Assembly (NCBI GenBank): GCA_037447605.1
Contig: CM074808.1
Span: 2,728,001 to 2,792,000, forward strand
Source of the DNA: Zygnema circumcarinatum SAG 698-1b
Taxonomy: Eukaryota > Plantae > Zygnematophyceae
Length of the DNA: 64,000 nt
Direction of reading: 5' to 3'
Part shown: positions 43,094 through 64,000 of the stretch, piece after piece
How positions within the stretch are numbered: position 1 is the first letter of the stretch
How the letters are laid out: each line of letters begins with the position of its first letter
Notes under the pieces: generated by a model
Database searches by the model: none
What the model saw: the letters and a program-made list of their open reading frames with translations, nothing else
What the model was told of the DNA's origin: nothing
Translations under genes and position numbers: made by a program

Positions 43094-43130
43094 CNNNNNN
43101 NNNNCCCCCCCCCCCCCCCCCCCCCCCCCC
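43065..43130. other. Poly-C tract spanning a 10-N assembly gap (43095-43104)
   Basis: 30 C, 10 N, 26 C; the true length is unknown. Confidence 0.95.
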
Positions 43131-43955: not shown

Positions 43956-44603
43956 CTACTTAGCAACCTGCTTCATGATGATGGTAACGCGGCAAGTCCT
44001 CTTGCGAATTGGAAACCCCCGGCCCTGTGCCCTAGGCTGAAATCTCTTAAGGGTCGGCCCTGCATCCACCAGAGCTTCACTGACGTACAGATCGCTCTTT
44101 TTGAGGCCCAAATTGTTCTCGGCATTCGCAGCGCAAGAGAGCACCAAGTCGTACACAGGCAAGCAGGCGCGGTAGGGCATGAACTGCAATATCATGAGAA
44201 TGTCCTCGTACGTTCTTCCGCGAACCTGGTTCACAACCCGGCGAAGCTTCATTGGGGACATGCGCAAACCCTTAAGGAACGCCCTGGCACTTTTCTCCGT
44301 TTCCACCTCTTCCTCCCCAGTCAATAAAGCCATTGCAATAGGGGAGGCGTGTGACAGAACCTGGCGCTGTTTCATGATCTTGCAACTTACGGAGCGGCAT
44401 AAAGCCCTTGATGAGCCCATGAATTCTGAATGAGATAATTGCCCACAATTTACAATCAAGCTTTGTGATGGCTTGCTTGCAACTCTAGTGAACTCGGCTC
44501 CAGGTGCAGCCGCTCTATCTTGCCTCAATGTGAGCCCAGAGCTAGCTGCAGGGCCAGCACAAATGGCCATGGATGCCATGCCTGCGACTAAAGATGTTGT
44601 CAT
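43956..44603 (-). CDS. rpl22: Nuclear-encoded plastid 50S ribosomal protein L22 precursor, 215 aa, intronless CDS
   Basis: C-terminal ~115 aa (LRMSPMKLRRVVNQVRGRTYEDILMILQFMPYRAC...SCAANAENNLGL...AGPTLKRFQPRAQGRGFPIRKRTC) are cyanobacterial/plastid-type uL22. The preceding ~90 aa are Ser/Ala/Arg-rich and acid-poor, like a transit peptide. Confidence 0.95.
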   Translation of the reverse strand: MTTSLVAGMASMAICAGPAASSGLTLRQDRAAAPGAEFTRVASKPSQSLIVNCGQLSHSEFMGSSRALCRSVSCKIMKQRQVLSHASPIAMALLTGEEEVETEKSARAFLKGLRMSPMKLRRVVNQVRGRTYEDILMILQFMPYRACLPVYDLVLSCAANAENNLGLKKSDLYVSEALVDAGPTLKRFQPRAQGRGFPIRKRTCRVTIIMKQVAK

Positions 44604-45733: not shown

Positions 45734-48700
45734 TCACAAAGCCTTCCCGGCGGAGCCGAACATGCGCAGCTTCTCTGCCACAACTGCCTGCATGGCCGCC
45801 TTGGCCTTCACCATGAGGTCCAGCAGGTCCTTCCCCCCTTCTTTCAGGGCATCCACATATGCCGCACGCACCTCCGTGTTCACATTGAACTTACGAACAC
45901 CGATCGCCACACACTCCTGCAAGGGGGGGGGGGGGCATGGTGGTACACACATCATCGTATTACGCCTTCAGTCAAGGGACATTGCCGTCATGCTTTGGGC
46001 TAAAAAAAAAGGGTTGGGGGGGCGGGCAGCAAAACAAGGATTGAGGCCACGCTAAGTTGACAAACGACCCTCGTTGCATTGGTGAACAGCAGGGTTCAAA
46101 ATCACGGTATGGACTCTGATTACACGTGTGGAACTATAGGAAGGAGCATACCTCGACAAGCTCCCGAGGCAGCCCTGATGCTCCATGCAGCACAATCGTC
46201 ACTCCGTTTTTCAGTGCCACCTCTTGCAGGGCCTGCAAACAACACAGTCATGGAACCCGTTCACCAGTTAGCCCGCTGCGACTCGCTACGGCAAGACATG
46301 GAACCGCACATCACCACACTTCGCCTGTGTGAAGCATTTAGGGTTCAAGGAGGTAAACATAGAAGAGGGACAGACCCTGAGACGCTCCAAATCGATCTTC
46401 GGCCCGCTGGGAGGGTACTTCCCATGCACATTGCCCACGCATACGGCAAGGGCTGATATGCCAGTTGACTTCAAAAAATCGTCAGCCTGCACAAAGCCAT
46501 TTAGACAGGAAACGTGAGGATAGGACCGAACCAAGATGTCTCTCCCCAGCCCAGCTCCGATTCTCTGGCTAACTCAAAGCTCTTCGTTTGTTATTGACAA
46601 TGCGAAACTAGACAAAGCGCGCTGATTTGACCTGCAAGAAAGACGTAATCGACAGGAATTGAGTAATTTCACCAGAAGGAGCTTACCTGAGATACATCCG
46701 TCAATTTAGCCTCATATTCCTCCACCGTAAGTCCATCCTCAGTTCCAGACAACCGCCCCAACTCTGCTTCCACCAAAAGGCCACCGTTCTTTGCTGCTGC
46801 AGCTATCTTTGATGTGAATGCAACATTTTCTTCATAGCTGAGGTGTGAGCCGTCCACCATGAGCGAGTCGAATCCCTGCTAACAGCGGAGGAAATAGGTC
46901 AGAAACCATCTGAAGCCGACGTTTCAGCGTTTCCTTGCATGGGTGAACTGAACTGCCCAGGAACAAGCACTGTCGTTCAATCTACCGTTTTTTGCACTCC
47001 TGCTAGGTATTGTTTATCCAAATCTAAAGCAGCCACGAGTGGATTCAGGACAACAAGGCAGGAAACCAGGAATTTCAGAACCTTGTGCACCGCTGCCAAG
47101 AGCTCGCCTTCATTAGTGCCATGATCCATGTGCACAGTGACAGGAACCTGATAGGCCCAACACAGAAAATTATCCTTAGAATGGGCCTGCAGCATCGCAT
47201 TTCATTTTATACGTATGGACTAGATTAAAGGGGATGGAAGCAACTGCTCTCCAGAGTCTGCAGATCGCAAAAGGAAAGCAGCACCCGTTTATCTCAGGCA
47301 GCTTCAGGCAAGGGCAATCAAAAAAGCGATTGGAAGGATTGGGAAGCGCACAGAAGCAGTGTCAGCAGCCGCTCTGCAGGCTGCGATAAGCAGGGAGCCG
47401 CCCTCACGCAGACTGCTGGGGTGAATCTGCAAAAAGCAACAAAAAGCAGAAAAGCAAAAAGCAAAGAAAGCAGAAAGCAGGGCTTGTGTAAGGTGCTTGC
47501 TTCAGCGTTTGAACGACTGGGAACCATGACAGCAAGGACAACTGCCTCCTTTATCAAGCATAAGCAGTGAGAGGCTTTCTAATGGCTGGCAGAAATAGGA
47601 AAAGAGAGACATTTGCACAAGCATTTACAAGTTCCGGCCCACAGAAACATAGAGATGTGAGAAAGTCTTTCTGAGATGCAATGGAAGCTTGATGTATTTT
47701 GAACACCAATAAGTTCACAGCAAGCATAACTTGCACCTGACAACTGCTTAACCTGTCATCGGAGTCATTGCATGGAACACAATCAGAACAATGTGGCTAC
47801 ATTCGCTTCAGGTCTCAGGTCTCGCAGATCACTGATCTACAAACTAATGACACCCCAGCTGCGCTTTATTTCACAGCTGTACAACAGCAGATAACCACGC
47901 AATAGAGATCAGCCCCGAATACTACATTCGTTGCCGTGTTACCAGCAGCCAAAATCACGTACAAACGTGTGAGAAAAAATGCATCTAGATATTAGTTATA
48001 GTGTAGGAGATGAGCACAGAAAGTATCCCCACCTGCAATATTGCGGGGCTGCGCTCAGCCTCTGCTGCAGCTACCACTGCCTGTATTCCTTCCAAGTTGT
48101 ACACATTAAAGGCCCCCACAGCATATCCACCAGCTTGAGCAGCCTGCAACAGGCATTCAACAAAGATACCCACTTTGATGAACAAAGTGATCCGGAAATG
48201 ACATGGTTGACATTTGCGTGCTTCATTAGACGGGAGAATCAAGGGTTCCCTCTCTGCACTAAAGCCATGTCCACATCCTCTCAACATACAAGAAGAGGTT
48301 GCATCACTTCGAACCACGAAAGATCATTAGCTTCCCAATGGATTATTACAACTGAATGTTGGGAAATCAAGGATGGAGCGAGCATATGCCGCCCTTCACA
48401 ATATTCCTGCTCATAAAACCCACCTGCAGAATGCCTGCAGTGGAAGAGCGAGGCACCTTCGACCATTTGGCAACCACCTCTGCGAGAGCAGCCGGACCGC
48501 CAACATTCCCTGAAGGCCCCCCAACGAGCTCTGCTCCATCACTCGTTTCAAAGCCCAAGAGAGGCCGCACAATTCCTTACACTAAAAGGCCAATGGATAA
48601 AGCAACATAACAACAGTGAAAATTTATGGTGACAGAACACTGCGGCTACCTGGGAACACGATGTATGGTACACCTGGATATCTGCTGCCATTGCCCAGAG

Positions 48701-51700
48701 CCCATAGAGGGACTCCCGGGAGAGCTTGCCCTAAGACCAAAGCTCTCTTAGCACCAAGTGCTTTAGTGGCCGTGTCTGAGGAGGTGATGCCGCCCTGACA
48801 AAAAGGGGCAAGAAGGGAACAAATCTATCCAGATCAGATCACTGAACTTGCACGATTGCTACTGCACGAGTGACTACGTGGATCGATGGTCTCTTACTGA
48901 TTGGGATTCAACATATAAGTGCAAGTGGTAGTCTGATGCTTCTGCCGGGAAGATAGAGTGGGCTACAATGCACTCTCATGAGGCGTCTGATCTACTGGAA
49001 GCAAGGGGTCCTAAACGGAGCAGTCCTACAAACCTTGGCCAGAATGTAGCGAGGACGAGTCTGAATACGCTGCACTATTTCCACGAGGCTTGAGCTGATC
49101 CGCCCCCCAATGGCCAGGCTGCTTGCAGGATCTGCACAGGTTGCAAAGTTGCAGGATAATGAAGGGTGCTGCAACGAAACCTTGCAGAAGGAAACTACTC
49201 ATAAACACTTTTTACGGGTTTGGAGACATTGCAGCGGGGAGGCTTACTTGCTCCAAGGAGCAGCTTGCGACTGGTCAGCACCAAGGTGTCTCGACCGGCA
49301 GCAAGGGCTGCATCAGCCGCACTTGCAGCTCTACCAATCTCTGCTTCTCGGACAGTGACATCTTCGGAAGCAACAGCTTCTGCGTTCACCTGGAAACAGT
49401 GTATTTGCAGAAAATGTGGTCATCCATGGAAGGATTGTTTGATAGTCTTCAAGCATGTCTTGTCGACTTGAAGTGGCGGAATGCAAAAAAGCACACGTCC
49501 GGGTGTAATCATTGTATGGCTTTTGGAACATGTGGTATTATTTCTCGGAAGATCACAGTTGGAAAAGGGAAGAAAAACTACTCTAGGAAAAACTGCTCGC
49601 CAAGGCAGGAAAGTTTTAAATCTCCTGGACACGCTCCTTCACTTCGTTGTTAATGGAGAGAAAAAGGTATAGAATGAAGAGTGGAAGACATGGGCTTTAC
49701 ATAAGCAAACTGAGTCATGATGAGTTCCAGTACATCTGACGGAATAGACTGCAACACGTAGGCGGAGCTGCAACAAAGCTGACTGAAAAAGTATTACTGA
49801 GAAATGAGCTCCTTTTTTGAGGTTCTTGCCAAGTGGGCTTCCTAACAGCTGTCAAGCAGATGGACAGTACTTACAGTGATGGCCTCCAGGGAATCCCCTC
49901 GCTCTGCCAAAAGTGTTTCCACCTAAACCGAACAGCAAACGAATGTGGACCAAACTTAGTCAGTATGCAGAGCTCATCTCTGGTTAGACTTCGTTTGCAA
50001 GTACACACTCTCTGCACTGACAGTCACTATAGTTTTGAGGGAAAGCACATGGTCCCGAACAAAGGAGTCTTCACTCGGGAAGGTGAGACACTCACGTGGA
50101 ATTTGGTCGACCACACAACAATCTACACCAGAAAGGCAGTCACTAGTAGGTATTGAATTTGAAAGAGATAAAGGAGACGAATCCAATAAGGTTGAGTCTC
50201 TACGGAGCTGCATACATTGTAGCTTCAGTCTAGAATACCGTTCAATCACCATAAAAAAGCAGGTAAAAACTGCATTCTCACAAGGCAAAGTTATCTCTAA
50301 CCTCTCTATACAGGAGTGTTACCTGCTTGCTGGTCTTGGGAACATAAGAGCCGACCACAATGAGCCCTCCATGGCGTGAACTCGCGGTATTCAGTGAGAG
50401 GCCAACCTCTGCAGGACCAAGAGGGGGCCGAGCCTTCATGCCCAATCTCGCAGATACGAATGATGCGGCTGTACGGCAGAGAAAACGCTTCCCTTGCAGC
50501 TCGGCCTGCAATGCAACTCAGAGGAAGGTTAGAGCCCGCATTGTCGCAAAGCAAGCACATCTCTTTCCGCAGAGTTGGCACTTCTGATGAGGTTGGCTTG
50601 TGTTGTGTGTGTACCTGCAGCATGCCGGCCGCCACCACTCGCATGTCTCCATCGCTGGCAGCGTTAATTATGCAAACCACTCCCTGAACGAAGAAACAAA
50701 AAAAGTTCATGAATAGAACTTATTGAGTGGCAGTACAAATCTCGTGTATCTCTGCAAACATGCAGAGATACACGCTCTGCTGCTTTCCAACAAGCGGGGT
50801 ATTCTGCAAACTTGACCATTGATGGCAGCAGCCATTTCCTCATTTAACTCTGCTAAAGCGCCGATAGGGATTTTTGGCATCGTACAACAGGAAGAACTGT
50901 ACCCTTTGGCATATTATCATACCATCAGGTTGCGATGGACGTTGCCTTCTAAGCTTACCTTGGAAAAGCCACAAAGCTGCTTGGCCACCATCTTAGGTCC
51001 TCCATTACGAATTGTTTCCAATGAGATCGACGCAACATCCTTTGCCAAGACTCTGCCTTTCGTCTTTTCCTCCACCCACTGCGAGCAAAATTAAAAAAAA
51101 AATCAAAACAGTTTCGTGATAGAAGTATCCCAATCTGAGCGTTACTGATCGATGATCAAGAAACGATCACGATTGCTGGAGTTCATGAATTTCTTATCCG
51201 AGGAGCAGAGGGCATATGCGTTTACACAGTATTGCACATACTTTATACACATATTCACATATTGCATGCACGCAATAACTTAACCATAGAGAGACCTAAG
51301 GTTTTGAGGAGTTTGCATGCCCAATGAAGCAGAAGCGCACCTGTTTGAGGTCTGAGGATGTGTACCCGAACGCGGCATCCTTTGCAAATTCCGTCAGTCC
51401 TGCAGGCACTAGCCTGCACTCAGCAAGGCCTCCACTTTCCATGAGCGGAAATACAAGGCTGTGTGATCTGTCAAGAAGTGCACTGAAAATGCATAGAAAA
51501 TCAAACGAGTGTTACCTGGAAGAAGGGGTCGTGTAACGGGAAAAAAACAGACAATTTAAGGGGGAAAAGCAGACAAAGAACATGCAGCCGTCACCGGTCA
51601 GGTTAATTCATTAAAAATGACTTTCTGAAGGGTGCAATCCTTAATGAGAAAAGCTTGTAGGGCATTTTATTTGAAGAAATGCATTACAAGCGTGATACAC

Positions 51701-54700
51701 TCGACACAGGGCCTAACGCTCCGCATTTACACTCAAGTCGTCCCAATTTCCGTCTGAACAGACTGATGAATGTTGCATCAAAGCATTCTTAACAAGCGGC
51801 AGGGTTCGACGCGGAGATTACGAGATATGGGTTTACACCCAAGAATGTCCTATTCGATGACTAGCAAGAAGACTGATAATCGCAGCTAAACATGGTGAGG
51901 CGAAAGTCAAGGGAGCTGCGGGCAACACAAACACTCTAGGAATAGCAGTCTGTCTGTTTTCGAAAGCTAGGGCGAGCCACTCCACTCACCTGTCGAATGA
52001 GTGGCTGTGAACTCATCCAACACCATCCCTCATATGGCAACTAAGAAATGAAACGTATTTAGACCTTCAAGATATGGTCTCCAAAGGGGATTAGAGTTCA
52101 TCCACTTTTCTTGGTTTCCACCTTTGACCGGTCTTCTTTTGCTCCGGCACAATAAGCCATTCAATTTGTGCAGCAAGTCAGCCAATGAGAGGCAGGTAAG
52201 TCACATTGCCAGGCTATAAACACACCAAGTCTCAGGTTGGCTCCGAACAGTTATCGCCTATGCAAGGAACGGAGGAAGGACGCTCACATATCGCCATCGG
52301 CAACATAATGTATGTCGGAAATGGTATAGCGCCCGCCCTGCAAGAAGAAAGGGCAAAGAAGCCACGCATCCGTCTCTCCTACCACCTCTGCAGCTGCATC
52401 AGCCTCCTGCCATGGCCATAAAAAAGTAAATCAAAACGATTTAACCTCACAGCCGAGGTCAACTCAGCTCCACCGCACACCCAGATCAACAAAGGTGGAT
52501 GGATTGCCACTTGGTCTGAAGCAAGGAGAGTGCATTTCCTCACGGGAGAGAGATGCCCACCTGCGGAAAGTGACCCCTTAGGGTGGAGTCGCCCCTTAAG
52601 ACTATGGTGAAACCTCGCCCACCCGCTCTGCCTGCCGCCTCTGCGATTGCGCTGCAGATCTCTCTCGTCAATTTCACAGCCTGTCACCAGAAGGGTCTGA
52701 ACACCATCTCAGGCTGCATATATAACGAGCCGGGACTGACTGCCCGACAACGTTCTTCAAGAGAGGAATGCAGAGTGCCTCGCATGCTTCAAGAGGCATG
52801 TTCAGAACGGGGACAATGCGTTCAAACTTCACTGTCTATGGGACGAGGCAATAAGAATGACTGGGAACACGAGACTACTTCTGGTTTTTACTCTTGATTC
52901 TTGGCCATAGACAAAAGTCTCAGATGATAAGCCCGTCTCTTCCCATGTGTAAGGTTAGTAAAATAAAAGGTTTTTCTGGACCATGAAGCAAGAGCCCCCC
53001 ATGATCGTATCCCTGCTTGTGTGCTAAACCCCACAAAGTGCTTACCCACCTCTTCAGTAGGAAGAGCTCGCGAGTTTGTGAGAATAAAGAAGCATGCAGG
53101 GTTTTTCTCCAGCTCTGCCTGAAGGGACTCCACACTCCTGCAACCGGGGAATCTTCCAGCATGAATCAGTGTCTGCCACTTCCATCTTGGGCAAGCTCCA
53201 TGGATGCTAAACAAGAAGGTCCGGTGACTCCGGTAGTTGGGGCATGCATGACAGAGGTCAATAGGATTTGGTGGTCTAAGAGAGAGCTTCTGTGGGACTG
53301 AAGGGCAAACACACGAACTGCGCTGCTTCATGCGTGCAGTGCGTTTCCTCACCAGCCATGACTGTGACGGAACATAATGACTGCAACCATCAGCATGTCA
53401 TCAACACATCTTTCGATCCGAAAGATAAAACGGCAATAAGTCACTGAATCAAGCTGCAATACGAACAGCACTACCATCTCATCTCTGAGAGTCCCTAACG
53501 TCTCAGTTGAAGACCACGCGCCATTCCTTACCATTCCGTCAGTACGGACACACCATGCACAGTCTGAGTTCCTGTTGGGTCGTCATCCAGCACTATGAGC
53601 ACATCCGCCTTGCCAGACCCCTCCGTCTCAGCAATCTCAGCCGTTAAATCATGCGGCCATTCTGGAGGGAGGGAGTGAAGGGTTGCTTCCAATGGCAGAG
53701 GCTTTATCCGTCCATCCTGAAGGGACGGTGCTGCCTCCGTCTCCGGCGAAGCAACGGAAATTCCTGCCAGCTTTTCGAAGACCTATCCATATGATACCCA
53801 GAGAACGTGATTTTTTTAGCAATTTCTGCAGGTGAGATTGCACAAGGCTTCGTGCACAAGAAACTTTTCATGTGCTTTCTGATGCAATTTCCAAAACGTC
53901 TACAAACGAGGAACCCAGTCAGAACTAGAAAACGCTGATTTTTCCACGTTGGCCGTGCAATAACAGCCTTGCAGCGTTGTGGTTACCGAGTTCACCCCAG
54001 CAACATTTCACGGGACTGAAGAAGTCGATACGATATAAAAGCCCTAAAATCACTCTCTCCTGTAGTTGCAAATGGGGCAAGCAAACCACGAGGAAGAGGC
54101 TGGCACACCTTCACAACCGCTGCATCGTCTTCACGGCCCATGCCTCCTGCTGCCCCTGCATTCCATGGATGCACCAATATGCCCTCGTTATAGCCCACGT
54201 GTACATCCTGCTCGAGAAAGAACCATGTATGAAGGGTATGAACTTGCAACATACGAGACCAGCTACACAATAGAAAATCGAGACACAGTGGGAACTAACA
54301 GACTTGAGTGATTTCAAGCGCAACGAAAGAACAGTTGTGAGGCGGTGGGGAGGCACAAGGGCCTGACAAGAAGGGTTGCTGTCAAAGTGCACATGAGCTT
54401 AGGTGTTGGATGCAACCTACCATAGAGGAACTGCTGATGGGCAATAGCAGCCAAAGGCAGTGGGAAATAGAGGGCCTGTGCCTGACCAAGAACGATGGCC
54501 TGCCATGCCAAAACTGCAGAGTCAAAACATTCGAACACTAGTGTCTATAATTTCGATAGTCTAAGGTGCAGGTTACGCATTTCTATCAGGAGTTTGCAAG
54601 CAAAAGGAAGTTACTGGCATAAGATTAACAGCTCTCTCAGTACAGAGTCAATCATCATGAGACAGCCAGAATGCAAGAAGCGTGGGCCTTTTTTAAATAT

Positions 54701-57700
54701 GTACACTCTCACAAGAGTTAAAGTGATGACAATGTTCGTCAAAAGACTGCATGCAAATAGGAGACATAAGTAGCAGGTGCAGAGCGTACAAGGTCCTTGA
54801 CAAAAATGTTGAGGGCAGACCGAGGAGTGTAGTCGGCATCCAGCATGTGCGGTACACGGTTTTCAAACATCCTGCCACATCAGAGTAAATCACACAGGAT
54901 CGTCAAATGCTGCTACACTTCGCTGTTACGTTGCCACGAACTCAAAGCAATCAGAGCAGCCGCATGACAAAACCCAACAATTGCAGCGAGAGAAGTCAAC
55001 ATGAACGTAAAAGAAAGCCACCCCGCATCTTCCCATAGCATTTGAAGAACGCCCGAAACACTTGTCTACACACGTTTCTGGACCAATGATGTGTTGTGAA
55101 AAGTCTTTCCCCTCAGCAACGAGACAAAACACTTGTCTACACACGTTTCTGGACCGATGATGTGTCGTGAAAAGTGTTTCCCCTGACGAAAGGGAGCCCC
55201 ACCAGGATGCCCCCGCCGCGTCGCGGATGACGGCGTAGAGGGGCCGCGTGGCGAGGCCCGCCCTCGCGCCCAGCGCCATCGCCTCCGCCGCGGCCGCAAT
55301 GTGCACCCCCGCGAGCAGCTGGTTCACCATCTTCACCGAACTGCTCCAATAGCCATACATACACCATACAACATACAACAGAGACCATTGGCATTCATGC
55401 CCTGCTCCTAGACCCATCTTCGTCGTTGCTTCGGAAGGGTTTATCGTTTGCAATTAAGGAGCGGCCTATAGTTGGACAGAAAAGCCATCCAGTTGAGAAG
55501 GAAGGGACAGAGAGTTCACTATCAATAATCAGTCGACCATGGAAGTCTTTAGGGACAATTCGATAGAATAAGTAGAGCCAGAAAACAAGTGAGACCGTAG
55601 CTTATCAACCATCAGACCCCCAAAGTCCTGAGCAGAGATAAAGTTCACATGGAATTCATACGTGAGGCTCCAGTTTCGGTGAACCGCCTCAACCGTTCCT
55701 AAGGTTGTCGTTTCATTATTTCAAATAGAGTTTTAAATAGGGGTGTGAACCTACCAAAACAATGCCTTTTCATCTTCATATCCTTCTGAAATATAACTGT
55801 GGCATCATCAAGAGACTTATTGAGGACTCGAGAGCCGCACACTACTAACCAACATCCTGGTGCCCTTTAAGGGCGGTTTTTTCCTCCAAAGCAGGACTTA
55901 CCTGCCCGCTCCCACTCCTCCCGAAATGACATAAAGTTTCTCCGCCATTGCTGCCCCAAAAGTCCCAAAACAGACCAACATCAGTTCCATCGTACTCCGT
56001 CAGGGACCTCGAGTTGGGTTGCAAAAAAGGGCGACCAACGGGGAATTGAGCTATTTCAGACCTCGTAGGACCTCCACCACTTAGATGTTGACAATCACTT
56101 TACACAGCCATCAGGCTGTTTCAAAGTAAAGAAAAATTTGGTCAGCCTGACAAGTTTAAATGCAGACCTTTCAGAGCGGCTCCAGCTCTTGCAAAAGCGT
56201 CGTTGCTGCCAGACGCCATTATCTGCAGAATGATGGCCACATGCCAAAGCATGAGGAGAACAATCTATCTTGGTCTTAATGCATTTCAGAGTACGATCGT
56301 TATTGCGACTAGAAAGAAAGGTAATGCATAGGATGAAAAGTGGCAAGCAGCTGTATATGAGATGCACCGTGAGTGAGCCCGCTGCCGCTCGAGCTACTCC
56401 GCCGGACACCGGTGCATCCACTAGAAGAAGACCTCTTCCCTCCTCTGCAGACCCGCGAGAATCAAGGTATGACACTTATCCTCCACAGCTGCTTCTACAA
56501 TGGACTGCAGATTAATAGTACTCAGGATTCATCACTCCAACACTTCAGGTTGACCCTAGGCGTGCTCGTCACAGCTTAAAAGAAAGTTGATGGTGTCGTT
56601 GATGCGTTAGCAAACAGCACATTTATGGTCATATTTCTCGCTACAAGCCACTCATCACCACCACACGTCTTGATGGTACTTAGAAGCAAGTTATGGAAAG
56701 GACGTTACGGAATAGGCACCTGCCAAACGCTTCTCCAATGTACGTACAAAATCTGGGGAAACGGTAGAGCAGAGTACCACCACAGAGCCAGGCTCGAGCT
56801 CTGCTTGCCAAAAAAACGCTACGATCAAATTGCTGAAAATCTGATCAACAGATACGGCTGTGAATCGCCATTCTAGATTACAATGTTGCAATCATTCAAG
56901 CTGCCTACAGCACTTGGAACGTCAAAAGCATTCCATAGAACGAACAAGTAAAACCGAGGTCATACTTTACAGAGTACTCCGATCAACAGACAAGAGAAAC
57001 GTGCCATAGAGTTGTGCGAATAACAGAAGCCTAGTTCATTCAAGACTCGCACACAGAGGATGCCGCGGTCCTATGATAGCAAGCCCTCCAGACTATCTCA
57101 CATTCCGCCTAGCATTCTAGTGAGTGAGTAGAGCTGACCATGAACTTGTAATTCCGATTCGTATTCATCTAAATTTCTTCAATCAGCAAACGGAGCCCCT
57201 TATCTAACACACATTTGCAGATGTTCTTTCCGTAAATCAGAATTAGATAGGAAGCGGATTCTGTCCATTAAGTTTCGAGTCCGACCTGCAGCCGCCTTGC
57301 CTGAGCCGAACAGTACATCGTCTGCCTGTTCCGCATTTACCACCATGAGCACCAAAATTCCAGCACCTGCACCATCAGATTGCTTCAATGAAATATAGTC
57401 TAAACTGCATGTGTGATGCCGATACTCCTCTGTTCCCTTTTTCCAGCAAACACAGTAAGACGACAGACGCATACCCCTGTTACCCCTTTATCAAGCCTGA
57501 ACATGACCTTGTCCTAAAGAATACATCGAGAGATTCTCGCTCCGTGGCTTGCACGGATCTTCGCCCTTTGGCCATTCACTGCGACTGCTCGCTTCGAAGC
57601 TCACTTGGATGGAATCTTCACTGACGACTTTACTAGAGCAACATGAATGCAGCGGGGTTAAGATGTGCTCATATGGCAAACACTACAAGCACTGCTCATC

Positions 57701-60700
57701 CCAAATAGGCTCTAAACTTCACATAGATGCAGCAAGTCCCCGTTATGCACGCATGTCCAGATTTTCATTACACTATATGATACTACTTCAGTGAATCCAC
57801 ACTGCACCATCTTGCTATGCTTGGAGCTGGCGAGTGAACTAGATGAATTGTTCTTCCTCTCACAAATGACCATTTGAATAAGGAAGCAATGGAAAAGAAA
57901 CTTTTGTGTATATTACCACGACTTCAATCTCAAGGTCCAATGCAAGTAGCTATATGAGTCCCATTATTCCCAACCTTTGGCAGCCTGTGCAGGAGAAGCC
58001 GCAGTGGTCCCACCCACTTGGCGAAATCGCGTCATGGCCGGCTCATAAACCTGAACCACGGGAAATAGAGTCAACAGCAACTTTGTTAAGGGTGGAATTC
58101 AGTGGAGGAAACCGCTTAACCTTGCCAAGATCTTAACACTTAACAGTTTTGGGGAAAACATGCTGAAGGTTGCACGCCTACAGGAGTTTTTATACAATGT
58201 AAGCACAAGGCTGATGGCATGAGATTCATTTCCATTGCAAACATGCATAACTTTGAGAGAGAGAATACTTTCAGCCTGTACTGATAACAAGAACGAGACA
58301 GAAGAAAGATGAAGGTTCTGTATGATTCAAAAATAACTGCAGTTGAGGTTGCTACTTTGATTCATCAAGCGGCTCGTTATCAAGCAGGAGTCTAGCTTTT
58401 CTAGTGTAAGGAAACAATGGCGAGATGGCATTGCTGTGCGATTAACCAGAGTTGTGTGTTCAGTTAAAATACCACGGTTTTTAGGCGGACTAGGAACCCT
58501 CGAACACTACGGTTTCAGCAAACGCCTCACCACTTTCATTAAAACAGACACTTTAAATTCATTGATGAAAGCAAATTATTGAAGTCCTGTTCCTTCACAT
58601 TCATCAAAGGCGCCATAACCACTTCAGGTACCAATAACAGTAGCCATGAGGGCTTGAGCCCCTTTGCTATGAAAACAGAGCTGGCTATTCTAATCCCAAC
58701 TGCACAATTTCCCGGACGAACAGAAGGCAACACCAATCAGCGATGTCTCCCCATAACCTGCGGCCGATTTGACTGAAAACTGCCGGACCCAACAAAGTGT
58801 TTTATAAAAGAATTTCACACTTTCTTTAGTTGGCTAGAAAGAATGAAGTACTCACATCGTAGCCACAAACAGATATCCCAGCTCTGAGCAACGCCGTGGC
58901 CATGCCACTGCCCATTGCTCCGAGGCCTATGAAGCCCACGCGAGTTGGAGGAGGAGCCCCGTCAATGGCCGCCTGTGCAGCTTCTGCTAAGGCTTTTTCT
59001 GCCGGGCTATCTTCTACTGGTGAAGAGACAGATACATCTCCCAATCGTTCCCAAATCTGCAAGTAAGTCATAAGGACTTTCACTGACAGGAGAAAAGGGC
59101 TACCAGAAAGGAGAAAGGACGATGATGACTGTCAGTCTCTCCCTGCTCTATTATGTGGAGGGGTTTCTATCAGAGAACTTCCATGTAAAAGTTGAAATCT
59201 GCACCAATGAGAGGCAACCAAGTATTGCCTAGGCATAGCCAGCAAACAAGACTAGAACGCTATTTATTGTGCAGCAAACTCATCACTCTCGTAATGACAA
59301 AAAAATCTGGCTAGAAAAATGTGAGGGCACAACCTTCACGACAGCAGCATCGTCCTCACGCCCCAAGCCGGCATGGGTACCTGTCAGACCAGTCATAATT
59401 TTCGGTACTCATCAGACCACTCAAGTTTATCAGTTCAGATGCATGGAATCCTTTTCGTGTAGCCGTGATAATTGCTCCCAAAATCAAAAGATAGAAGAAA
59501 GGTGTTAAAGAAATCAAAACTTTTGCATTGACCGCAGTCGACAATGGATAGCCTGAACCACTTGAACAATAACCACAGAACCTATTCAACCCTAAATGGC
59601 AGCACATATCACATGCTAAAAGATCACAGCTTGTAAACACTCTCCTGCTAGTTTGGGTATACTGAGAAATTGCTGCTAAAAACTGTCGTGATGGGAATAC
59701 AACTCATCTACCAAAAATTTCACGTACAATTATGGACGGGTGTTTGTCGTTGTTCAATCATGCCCATCGGGAGATTTTCTTTGACGGCATGACCAAAGGC
59801 CACGAAACAAAACATTCCATCTGCAGAAGAGTCTCCTATTGCAGAATAAAAGGAGAGACAGAGGCTGCCTACCAAACAAGAACTGTTGATGCGCTGCAGC
59901 TGCAAGTGGTGTGGGGAATGTGAGCAGCTTGGCCTCCCCCAAGACAATACCCTGCAGGGTGCGATGCAGCAGACGAGGCAGTCCATGAGGAGCTGCCACC
60001 TGGCAAGCAGCAGCATAGCTCGACAATTCTTCTTGCCTGGCCCGCAGATGCCCTTGGCAGGGCTCACTATTAGAGTGACTGCGAGCAATTTTGGCGGCCT
60101 AATAATGGTGTCGCTGTACAAGCTGATGCGCAACATGGCATGGCAATTCGCCATTGACATCTGAACTGTTGTCAACAACTGGAAACATGAAATGTCGAAG
60201 TCCGTGTCCCAAATCATGCAGAACCTCCAAGTGGGTCATCTAAGCCTCTAATTATCAGGGTTGAGGTTAGGTAGATCGCCACAGCCGCTTCTCAGAGTAG
60301 ACATTAATGGGACATATTAAATAGATGAGATGAGAGAAACAATGAGAGTAGGCCAAAGAAGGAGCAAAGACTGAGTGACAGAGCGCACCAAGTCCTTCAC
60401 GAAAATGGACAGTGCAGACCGCGGGGTATAGTCAGCGTCGAGCATGTGTGGCACGCGGTTTTCAAACATCCTGTCACATAGCGATAAAAATTACAAAAGT
60501 GAGAGTCACATCATAACCCGAGGAGGAGGCTTGTACCTCTCAGTGGGATTTATTTTACCGAGACTCCCTATTTCGAGAAAAGCTTAGAGATTTGTTGAAC
60601 CGCAGAGAAAAAGCCAACTTTCCCAGGGAGAGATTGACATGTTTCAACATCCAAAGCATGGTACACTGACTTGGTTGAGGTCAAGCACAGCTTCGAATTT

Positions 60701-63700
60701 ATGAGTACAGATGATCAGTCAACATTGCTTTTTGCATTCACTTCTTGTTGGGCCTCAACAGAATCAAAGTCCGTGAGTCTCACAAATCAATGGTCTGGCA
60801 AAGGAGCCAACACTGTTCCTGTTTATCAATCGTAGTCGGGAAGTAAGAAAAAGTCAGGAGTAAAGAGTGGGTCAGGAGGTAAAAGTATGTCTTTGCCCGG
60901 AACCTGGTGCATACAAATAGGTGATCTGGACTAATGTGTCGTCAAAAGTCAACATAAACGTAAAAGAAAGCCACGCCGCAATCTTCCCATAGCATTTGAA
61001 GTACGCCACAAACACTTGTCTACACACGTTTCTGGACCGATGATGTGTCGTGAAAAGTGTTTCCCCTGACGAAAGGGAGCCCCACCAGGATGCCCCCGCC
61101 GCGTCGCGGATGACGGCGTAGAGGGGCCGCGTGGCGAGGCCCGCCCTCGCGCCCAGCGCCATCGCCTCCGCCGCGGCCGCAATGTGCACCCCCGCGAGCA
61201 GCTGGTTCACCATCTTCACCGAACTGCTCCAATAGCCATACATACACCATACAACATACAACAGAGACCATTGGCATTCATGCCCTGCTCCTAGACCCAT
61301 CTCCGTGTTTGCTTCGGAAGGGTTTATCGTTTGCAATCAAGGAGCATTGTTTCCATAACTTTCCCCATGACAAGGAAACTGAAGTGGATACTGACAATGG
61401 AAAACGTTTTGAAACGACATCTACTGATCACTCTAATCACTCACCTGACCAACGCCACTTCAGACAGAAAAAAACGAAGCAAGGCCCCTAGACAGCTGAC
61501 ATGCTTAGGATATCGGAAGAACATAGGGAGTTCGAGGGTGCCGGAACCGGGTGCCACACCATAGATCTTAGATTTGCTATAAGGACATTCTGAGTACAGG
61601 ATCCATACAAATCCTGGTTCACAATTTTTAATCTTCGAAACTTCGGTGTTCGTGAAGCCGTATATGAAATCCTAATGCTGTCTGAAACCATCCATCCGTG
61701 TATTGTTTCCTGAAGCATGAATGAAGGGCTTGTGTTGAATTCTAACACATGTTTTCTAGCTAGTGAGTCTTCAGAGGTGAAGCCACTGCAGCTCTGAATT
61801 CAGCCCTCGAAAATGAAGGAGAATACTCAGAAAGTTATTGTGACTGGCAATCCACCAGATTTTCGTTGTCATGTCTATCGCTAACAGTCATGCGAAAAAG
61901 GACCACTTATTTTCGCACCTTTTTAAAGACCTTGACAGTACGATTCCACTCAACTGTCATCAGGAACCAAAAAACACAGATCCTGCTGCTGCAGCTGAAG
62001 CTGCTGAGCTCTTCAGCAATGCAAAAGCACACCCGAACATGGCGGATAATGCAAAGTTGGAAAAGTAAAAAAGGAAGGGGGGGGGGGGGTCACTAAAACC
62101 GCGACTTCTGAGTAGAACTTTGCACTGCAAGGCTGTTCTGCTGAGAGGTAATCATCCCCAACACTAGCAGGGCAGGAGTCACATGCCAGTAATGAACTCT
62201 TACCTTCCAGAGCCTGGCTCCTTGCCGATAATGTACAGCTTCTCACTCATGGCTGCATCCACAAAATGTACCGACAGTTTGGAAATGCCACATTCAAGTG
62301 ATGAAATGATGAGATAAAATGATGTAATCATAGTAACATGAGATGAGATGAGATGATGATGATGATGGGATGAGCATCAGGGAAAATTTGTAATGGACAA
62401 AGGTACTTCTCTGTCTGAAAGGTACGTCTCATGACAGGTCTAGGTTGGAACACTCTAGCATCATCCCAGCAAATGCAAGCAAATGATTGTCTGGGTTCAT
62501 TGATGATAGAATACAGTGGGGCTACTCTCAAAAAATCCTTATGGATATACGCTTCGAAATGTATCCGCCATCTGAAAATCACGGTGAAATTCCTCACAAT
62601 GTGTTACCCAGTACATTCGCTTGTAACCCTTGAAACCAAAGAGAATATGAAAGGGTACCCTACTGTAAGGGTCCGCCCTTACCAGATAGAAAGGGGTCGG
62701 CTCGATCCAAAGCTTCAGTTGAACCTGAAGCCATGATCTGACACATGCAAAAACTCACGTCCAGTTTTTTAATCCAAAAGCAAACTTCAACAAGAGTGGC
62801 AGAGAGATAAAATCAGCAGCTTCATAATGTCAGGCATACACAGTGAAAAGATGAGGCAATTCTTCACCTATCCTTGGCAGAACTTTTAAAAACATTTAAC
62901 CTTTGAATTGAACGAGCCTGCAAACAAGCGACAGACCGCTGTTATCTATCATCAGTGGGACAGACAAGCCGCAGTCCCATGAGTAATTCAATTCAGTTTT
63001 ATCAACCGCTATGCAGCCCACGCCAAAGGAGCCAAAGGCGACGACCCTCCAAAAAGAGACCAGGGTCGCACAAGAGAATGAACCCACTACTTACAGTAAG
63101 AGAACCCGCAGCAGCGCGAGCCACCCCTCCTGAAACAGGCGCGTCAACCAGCTGCAAACCTCGTCCCAGCCCTGGCACGAAATCAAGCAAAACATTGCTC
63201 GTCGGAAGACAATAGATAGTGCTTGAATACTGTTAGAGCAAGAGAGGCAAGTGCACACACAAGCATAAGGAGGAGTGTTCATGTAGTGGGGAAAATATTA
63301 GAATAAGCATTTATAAACCAGCCTCGAAAGGATGGAAAAAACATCCCGGTCGGTGGAGTAAAGTCTGAAAGGCTCAACTTCTTTCAGTCAAGCGACGTGT
63401 TGGATGCAAGAGTTGATAATGTAAATTCCAGCTTTTTAACTTCTTCAACATTCGACAATTTTAGGCTTAATATAGAGGTCATTTATTGGACAGTTCGTTA
63501 ATCAATTCACCAGCTCTTCTCCCAGTTGAAAGAAAAAACAAACTGCTCTTCTTGAAAGAATACAAGTTCGCTCTGAGATAAGAAAGCATGCCCAATTCCT
63601 TTCAGAACACTTCTGAAAATCAGATACACACTAGTTACAAGCGTGGCATTAGATAGATCAGTCTATGAAAGACGCTACGATAGCAAAAAATCTGCTCTTT

Positions 63701-63841
63701 ATGTAGGAGAACTCTTTAACTATATTTCACATCATGCAGTTCGATGAAGAAGTGGCCTACCATTCAAGCGTTGATGGAGAGACCGGGCATAACTCGGAGG
63801 AACAGTTGAACATAGCACCACCACAGCATCATTCGCCAGGC
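45734..63841 (-). CDS. Multidomain fusion: two 3-hydroxyisobutyrate/6-phosphogluconate-dehydrogenase-like modules, DUF1537 four-carbon acid-sugar kinase, class II ketose-bisphosphate aldolase (Arabidopsis At1g18270-like); 5' end lies beyond the window
   Basis: Paired exons VVVLCSTV, LVDAPVSGGVARAAAGSLT, VKMVNQLLAGVHIAAAAEAM and MFENRVPHMLDADYTPRSAL occur twice; Rossmann motif VGFIGLGAMGSGMA; kinase motifs VLDDDPTGTQTVH and GLIVVGSYVPKT; aldolase motifs AVGAFNVYNLEG, VTVHMDHG, MVDGSH, VEAELGRLSGTEDG, VGNVHGKY, KFNVNTEVR; stop at 45734. Most 5' exon seen is 63841-63761. Confidence 0.93.
54993..55462. repeat. Intragenic direct repeat, copy A (exon 55340-55203 plus intron flanks)
   Basis: 55127-55419 is identical to 61010-61302 (offset 5883), with ~90% identical flanks. 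Copy A carries an extra 71-bp tandem unit at 55056-55126. Confidence 0.95.
60946..61345. repeat. Intragenic direct repeat, copy B (exon 61223-61086 plus intron flanks)
   Basis: Base-by-base comparison with copy A; the supplied ORFs 55137..55394 and 61020..61277 translate identically. Confidence 0.95.
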
Positions 63842-64000
63842 CTGTTCTGCATCATGGGTGAATCTTCAGTGACAAATCATACTGCTCTGCAGAGTAAAGA
63901 GCTAATGAAAGCTGCTTGACTAGATACAGGGAAAAGGAGACCTTTTTTCATTTCAAGATTGCTTATAAAATTAACTTGCAGTTCCTCAACCCGTTTATTC

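Follow-up and report, generated by a model that had tools for sequence, protein, structure and literature searches.

An identical 293-bp tract around the catalytic-lysine exon of two tandem LtnD modules in a Zygnema LTD-type gene, a probable case of ectopic gene conversion within one gene

Introduction

In plant somatic cells, ectopic double-strand breaks can be repaired by one-sided invasion, or by synthesis-dependent strand annealing (SDSA) that is finished by end-joining. Among paralogues, examples of GC-biased gene conversion are found in the histone, Hsp70 and HINTW families. Here, we describe a locus of Zygnema circumcarinatum SAG 698-1b which shares features with these systems. It lies in a 64,000-nt stretch of contig CM074808.1 (assembly GCA_037447605.1, positions 2,728,001 to 2,792,000), hereafter the window, and consists of a 293-bp sequence present twice, without any difference, in a single LTD-type gene that encodes two tandem LtnD modules. 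This identity very probably goes back to a recent gene conversion, ectopic and non-allelic, in which one module served as template for the homologous exon of the other. The repeat had been noticed in an earlier examination of the letters of the window alone (the sequence-only reading).

In Arabidopsis, the gene named LTD, with the order LtnD1-LtnD2-OtnK-OtnC, is required for L-threonate dehydrogenase activity; the algal search of that study covered chlorophytes only (10.1101/2025.05.18.654769). In the beta-hydroxyacid dehydrogenases, motif 3 is defined as GXXGXGXXXKXXXN/Q, in which the Lys is catalytic (PMC3642240).

Results

An exact repeat within an LTD-type gene

Positions 55127-55419 and 61010-61302 of the window were identical at 293 of 293 nucleotides, with a spacing of 5883 bp and a mismatch right outside each end, and this pair was the sole long near-identical repeat of the 64-kb window. 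Alignment and splice borders bore out the composition given in the sequence-only reading, that is, a 138-bp exon flanked by 76 bp of intron on its downstream side and 79 bp on its upstream side; the exon translation after its split first codon is SVKMVNQLLAGVHIAAAAEAMALGARAGLATRPLYAVIRDAAGASW. Because the neighboring exons are only about 65% identical and the introns are at background level, 293 consecutive matches are not a matter of chance. The main features are as follows.

45740 to 64000, minus strand: LTD-type gene (LtnD1, LtnD2, OtnK-like kinase, class II aldolase), recognized by Pfam, tblastn and RNA joints; its 5' end is beyond the window.
55127 to 55419, no strand assigned: identical tract, copy A (LtnD2); exact match to 61010-61302, represented by a read contig of its own (293 nt, about twofold flank depth).
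61010 to 61302, no strand assigned: identical tract, copy B (LtnD1); joined on its left side by a 5650-nt contig and on its right side by one of 19467 nt.
55203 to 55340, minus strand: 138-bp LtnD2 exon (SVKMVNQ...GASW) with the motif-3 catalytic Lys; AG/GT borders, RNA joint from 55340 to 55902, NAD_binding_11 at E = 8e-12.
61086 to 61223, minus strand: 138-bp LtnD1 exon with the same sequence as the LtnD2 exon; AG/GT borders, RNA loose ends.

The exon translations of the host gene matched the Pfam families NAD_binding_2, NAD_binding_11, SBD_N and F_bP_aldolase. Its modules follow each other as two units of NAD_binding_2 plus NAD_binding_11, a four-carbon acid sugar kinase and a class II aldolase, with the N-terminus of LtnD1 lying outside the window. 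A 1393-aa orthologue from Diphasiastrum (P0001) was collinear in tblastn from 63.2 kb down to 45.7 kb, and the nearest orthologue was that of Spirogloea, at about 62%. The relatives are At1g18270-type proteins, several of them annotated as L-threonate dehydrogenase, and the gene is predicted to be a plant-type LTD for L-threonate breakdown.

With regard to the protein, the 138-bp exon matched the Salmonella structure PDB 3g0o. Motif 3 spans the end of the preceding exon and this exon, and reads GGVGAGSSVKMVNQ in LtnD2 and KEPGSGSSVKMVNQ in LtnD1; the LtnD1 version has G-x-G and lacks the first G. Under the published motif definition (PMC3642240), both the Lys and the Gln of this motif are encoded in the repeated exon, in agreement with its earlier description as the catalytic-Lys exon.

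Several observations on LTD genes in general were made alongside. The presence of LTD in the zygnematophyte Spirogloea (P0156, P0158) and in the organism studied here means that the gene is not limited to land plants. In the alignment, the motif-3 Lys is gone from LtnD1 of liverworts (R in Marchantia, N in Calypogeia). The DAPVSGG motif of LtnD1 is degenerate in angiosperms and liverworts and intact in the window, Spirogloea, Selaginella, mosses and gymnosperms.

Both copies of the tract are present in raw reads and in transcripts

Polishing errors typically show up as short paralogous segments without any difference, and the repeat could in principle be an artefact in which one copy was overwritten by reads of the other, or in which a repeat was collapsed or expanded. 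We consulted Logan contigs, which are de Bruijn assemblies made from raw reads, of four runs placed on 55046-61045, including two DNA runs from 2019 and 2023. A genuine repeat in two copies comes out of a de Bruijn assembler as a node of its own once it exceeds the word size. In both DNA runs the tract formed a separate contig of exactly 293 nt, with a depth of 178 compared to 64-69 in the flanks in run X1, and of 329 compared to 148-183 in run X4. This node had exactly two entries and two exits, to which all four unique flanks were attached as in the window. A 10454-nt contig represented the left flank of copy A and spanned 55046-55156 with zero differences; a single 5650-nt contig joined the right side of copy A to the left side of copy B (55390-61039); and a 19467-nt contig, with the loose end ATTGTTTCCATAAC..., began 30 nt inside the tract and extended into the right flank of copy B.

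The RNA contigs placed the identical exon sequence in both domain contexts. In the RNA-like runs, an 871-nt contig with ten canonical splice joints began in the last bases of exon B, crossed what is left of LtnD1, the linker and LtnD2, and ended 28 bases into exon A, so that both copies are linked within one transcript; a 155-nt contig contained the exon, one loose end of which ties it to the upstream exon of LtnD1. Loose ends connected the LtnD1 copy with this upstream exon (YIIGKEPGSG) and with the exon at 60389-60470.

The sequence-only reading had proposed to check the assembly by read depth and unique flanks, and had named two different exon sequences in cDNA as a sign that the identity is false. 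The first check gave the 293-nt node, about twofold depth and four flanks in two DNA runs. As for the second, only one exon sequence occurred in the RNA contigs, in which no second version was seen, and the DNA contigs contained no alternative exon sequence. The two DNA runs may stem from the assembled sample, which leaves the artefact some room; nevertheless, contigs that do not depend on the genome assembler, from runs of 2019 and 2023, gave the same node at approximately 2.0-2.7 times the flank depth, and transcripts carried the same exon in both contexts without an alternative sequence. We therefore consider an assembly or polishing artefact extremely unlikely.

Two apparent back-joints, 60980 to 55046 and 60479 to 60946, were considered as deletion or circular forms and rejected; they reflect the contig of the left flank of copy A being placed on its homologues in B, and the start of the analyzed stretch at 55046.

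Homogenization is limited to one of eight exon pairs

Eight pairs of LtnD1 and LtnD2 exons were defined from RNA joints and homology. The following exons adjoin the repeated one in the two modules.

60389 to 60470, minus strand: next LtnD1 exon (MFENRVPHML...); 65 of 82 nucleotides equal to 54790-54871, pS 0.77, flanking introns at background.
54790 to 54871, minus strand: next LtnD2 exon, partner of 60389-60470.
62204 to 62252, minus strand: preceding LtnD1 exon (AMSEKLYIIGKEPGSG); 33 of 52 nucleotides identical to its LtnD2 partner, RNA loose end behind 55342.
55902 to 55950, minus strand: preceding LtnD2 exon, partner of 62204-62252; spliced to 55340 in RNA contigs.

Nucleotide identity was 1.00 in the pair e138, which is the repeated exon, and 0.55 in e81, 0.68 in e77, 0.61 in e55, 0.63 in e49, 0.79 in e82, 0.62 in e79 and 0.70 in e47. 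The 80 nt of intron on either side showed 0.40-0.57 identity in all pairs but e138. Silent sites were homogenized as well: the exon has a proportion of synonymous differences (pS) of 0, and the two copies agree at 155 intron bases, whereas e77, e82, e47 and e55 have saturated pS values of 0.66-0.81. Homogenization is thus limited to e138, one of the eight comparable exon pairs. These figures agree with the diverged neighboring exons described previously (nucleotide identity 0.55-0.79) and with the near-identical protein of the next exon, in which 26 of 27 residues are the same while synonymous sites are saturated (pS 0.77).

The pattern bears directly on a further explanation, namely that the two segments are held identical by very strong purifying selection or by a functional element within them, for example a transposon or an intronic RNA. 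The exon does encode a catalytic motif; however, synonymous and intronic sites are identical too, and equally constrained neighboring exons are synonymously saturated, so that this explanation is next to impossible. An intronic RNA or transposon was also rejected as a candidate, as there was no Rfam match, no inverted repeat and no further copy in the window.

Seven of the eight exon pairs share length and phase (77, 55, 49, 138, 82, 79 and 47), and therefore the internal duplication copied a unit that already bore introns. The layout with two LtnD modules was found in Spirogloea, in all sampled groups of land plants (bryophytes, lycophytes and seed plants) and in fungi; its occurrence across a zygnematophyte alga, land plants and fungi indicates that the duplication is old. 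An old duplication of the modules had been assumed in the sequence-only reading, and the shared architecture, saturated synonymous sites and unalignable introns are all in line with it. Over the repeated exon, LtnD1 and LtnD2 agree at 46 of 46 residues in the window, compared to 16-40 of 46 in 19 other species, and in two orthologue cDNAs the nucleotide identity between modules over this exon was 0.70 in one and 0.59 in the other, third positions agreeing no more often than by chance. In a tree built without this exon, LtnD1 and LtnD2 did not separate cleanly outside land plants, and the algae and fungi were not resolved.

Two other exon pairs, 63095-63171 with 56368-56444 and 60389-60470 with 54790-54871, share 23 of 24 and 26 of 27 residues, above all 19 other species. 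Conversions of great age or a constraint of unusual strength could be behind the high residue identity of these e77 and e82 pairs. Older conversion of e77 and e82 was rejected as a candidate, since synonymous sites are saturated and the motifs widely conserved, which leaves no evidence beyond constraint; for e82, the protein identity appears to be explained by constraint, with no sign of recent conversion.

Among the other species, the Ascomycete proteins P0168, P0172, P0229 and P0270 have about 1100-1140 aa and the order LtnD1-LtnD2-kinase, without the aldolase. Fungal LtnD1 and LtnD2 were sisters in the tree, with a Shimodaira-Hasegawa-like approximate likelihood ratio test (SH-aLRT) value of 95, which hints at homogenization or at an independent fungal duplication. 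These fungal proteins also raise the question of a transfer between plants and fungi.

Nested layers and junction scars

The identical core lies within an older layer of approximately 400 bp at about 90% identity, beyond which nothing aligns. The elements of this layer and the scars at its junctions are listed below.

54993 to 55054, no strand assigned: older-layer shoulder of copy A, downstream in gene sense; about 92% identical to 60946-61009.
60946 to 61009, no strand assigned: older-layer shoulder of copy B, downstream in gene sense; partner of 54993-55054.
55420 to 55463, no strand assigned: older-layer shoulder of copy A, upstream in gene sense; 40 of 44 equal to 61303-61346, then unalignable.
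61303 to 61346, no strand assigned: older-layer shoulder of copy B, upstream in gene sense; partner of 55420-55463.
55055 to 55125, no strand assigned: putative scar of the latest event, 71 extra bases in copy A; 61 of 71 equal to 55126-55196, 55 of 58 over 55056-55113, reads without differences.
60925 to 60949, no strand assigned: putative scar of an older event in copy B; about 85% copy of 61031-61058, with a 4-nt (AAGT) overlap with the start of the shoulder.

The shoulders of roughly 90% reported in the sequence-only reading were recovered at 40/44 on the right and about 92% on the left, with unalignable sequence beyond, and the succession of core, shoulder and unalignable sequence supports its proposal of a conversion confined to the exon and some 80 bp of intron per side, nested in a layer of about 90%. 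Its further proposal of repeated events gained from the two ages of the layers and from the two junction scars. The 71 extra bases, which separate the left shoulder of copy A from the core, were absent from that reading, as was the scar in copy B; the two scars bear on mechanism and direction. Positions 54993-55125 of copy A are collinear with 60946-61080 of copy B (120/135), and the older layer of copy A reaches to about 6 nt short of the expected exon start, where the identical tract begins. As this layer is collinear almost to the exon, the 71-bp unit would be copy A's own older intron segment.

The local alignment score of the copy B scar was 31, which none of 2000 shuffles reached. The end of this scar coincides exactly with the outer boundary of the shoulder, the two sharing the bases AAGT, which close the scar and open the homology between A and B. 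The scar suggests copy B as the recipient of the older event, with a 4-nt microhomology at the joint, and also a still older layer that extended to approximately +55 of the intron. On the upstream side no significant scars were detected, and no G-quadruplex motif was present in the tract. The tract contains zero differences in about 193 silent sites, from which it follows that the latest event is at most approximately one-sixth as old as the layer with 10% divergence.

From these layers and scars we infer at least two, and probably three, one-sided conversions, each closed by end-joining. In the latest event, a break would have occurred near the 3' end of the exon or at the start of the downstream intron, with repair templated by the other module. 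The upstream end would then have invaded the existing homology and copied a piece of the donor's upstream intron, the exon and 76 nt of downstream intron, after which the new strand would have been end-joined to the other broken end without annealing in register. The recipient's older intron segment would thereby have been pushed outward, and may now be seen in copy A as the 71-bp duplication. A similar event of greater age, by now approximately 10% diverged over about 400 bp and probably in the opposite direction, would have left the 25-nt fragment in copy B.

Given a conversion, the latest transfer probably had LtnD1 (copy B) as donor and LtnD2 (copy A) as recipient. Copy A is taken as the recipient because its upstream junction lies inside the 90% homology, while the downstream end was joined regardless of homology. 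In the reverse direction, copy A (LtnD2) would be the donor and would already have carried an independent 71-bp tandem duplication, the tract in B stopping where homology to the second unit of A stops. An end at the limit of homology would be unremarkable for a tract, and the exon is slightly closer to LtnD2 of Spirogloea than to its LtnD1 (38/46 and 34/46); nonetheless, this direction needs an extra, unrelated duplication whose divergence matches that of the shoulders by coincidence, and the like scar in copy B points to overshoot and end-joining as a recurring mechanism. We regard the reverse direction as unlikely. Residue similarity and trees were also tried as guides to direction and discarded as uninformative.

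The non-homologous junction also brings to mind a process without homologous repair, such as a replication template switch of the type of fork stalling and template switching (FoSTeS) or microhomology-mediated break-induced replication (MMBIR), or another non-homologous insertion. In its favor are the junction itself, the duplication and a possible junction filler, for which no template was found. However, the other junction is in register within homology of 90% that was already there, and the new segment replaces its exact counterpart, with exon phase and splice sites preserved; homology-guided repair fits this better. We hold such a process to be improbable; it would differ from homologous repair in mechanism, the outcome being the same.

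GC content of the repeated exon

The GC content at third codon positions (GC3) of the exon was 43/46 (0.93), whereas the 17 other LtnD exons range from 0.33 to 0.71; the part of the gene that encodes kinase and aldolase stands at 0.57 and the neighboring uL22 gene at 0.58. The two orthologue cDNAs showed no GC3 spike in this exon. Six residues are species-specific (A30, P33, A36, R39, D40 and A44), and all six need A/T to G/C changes when the ancestor is given the consensus states. The GC3 spike, together with these GC-increasing residues, suggests long-term GC-biased conversion, and repeated exon-limited conversions with GC-biased repair would best account for both. We infer that conversion was mostly limited to the exon, which is the only long stretch of homology, and that the intron flanks moved in rare events with illegitimate ends. 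An allelic recombination hotspot is an alternative cause of the GC3 spike.

Other features of the window

On the minus strand, positions 43956-44603 hold an intronless open reading frame of 215 aa. Its C-terminal half shares 55-67% identity with uL22 from the plastids of streptophyte algae and bryophytes, and its N-terminal extension of about 95 aa is consistent with a nuclear copy of plastid rpl22. Ten N at 43095-43104 mark an assembly gap.

Discussion

Taken as ectopic gene conversion between the two LtnD modules, the 293-bp identity is a well-supported fresh example of a known process and not a new phenomenon; the current understanding of gene conversion is unchanged by it. The sequence-only reading had spoken of concerted evolution of a single exon. 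The nested layers and the GC3 spike are in keeping with that description and would point to the long duration that it implies.

Several points weigh against the conversion reading or its details. The depth ratio of the tract was 2.7 in run X1 and not 2.0 as in X4, which could be due to GC bias or to another copy elsewhere in the genome. Contigs lose rare variants, and both DNA runs may derive from the assembled strain. The direction was deduced from the scars, and the exon is slightly nearer to LtnD2 of Spirogloea (38/46) than to its LtnD1 (34/46). The 123 nt of upstream-intron homology are left without a scar to explain their origin. Finally, the introns of the tract have a GC content of 0.47-0.50, compared to 0.43-0.49 in other intron DNA, and are thus not enriched, as they would be under a bias that acts alike on coding and non-coding DNA; therefore, GC bias acted mainly in exon-confined tracts, or the spike has another cause.

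A more far-reaching joint reading, which we put forward tentatively and regard as rather doubtful, would make the catalytic-Lys exon a long-lived conversion hotspot with at least three one-sided events in alternating directions, by which the active-site exons were kept identical. GC-biased repair would then have driven GC3 to 0.93 and fixed the six residue changes in both catalytic cores together. As a by-product, LtnD1 would be predicted to be catalytically intact here, compared to its decayed state in angiosperms and liverworts.

The locus provides a natural example of break repair homogenizing one exon between domains that are otherwise saturated at silent sites, and its preserved scars let mechanism and direction be read off the sequence. 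Phylogenies of LTD and LtnD made per domain can be locally misled by such tracts. Moreover, an in-phase direct repeat of 293 bp, 5.9 kb apart, could mediate the in-frame loss of one module. The exon is also a small test case for GC-biased conversion acting on the active site of an enzyme in a streptophyte.

Compared with LTD of Arabidopsis (At1g18270) and bacterial LtnD/YgbJ, the gene is alike in the order LtnD1-LtnD2-OtnK-OtnC, in motif 2 (DAPVSGG) and in the motif 3 Lys. Unlike in angiosperms and liverworts, where LtnD1 is degenerate, both LtnD modules of the window keep intact motifs.

With ectopic conversion of tandem duplicates, the locus shares a short tract of full identity that includes silent and intronic sites, old and diverged flanks, and nested tract ages. 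It differs in that the partners are two halves of one polypeptide, the duplication is old, one of eight exon pairs is affected and scars have been kept. With GC-biased converting paralogues, it has in common a GC3 far above the gene background and A/T to G/C residue changes confined to the converting segment, but here the rise in GC ends at the exon borders and the introns of the tract are at background level. In the form of its junctions, the locus resembles products of one-sided invasion, or of SDSA finished by end-joining, in plants: one junction is homologous and in register, whereas at the other, non-homologous one, recipient sequence has been duplicated by a templated overshoot; the 4-nt microhomology at the older scar is a further point of agreement. 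In contrast to those somatic events, the product described here is a fixed evolutionary one, in which the break is deduced from sequence and repair was apparently recurrent at the same exon.

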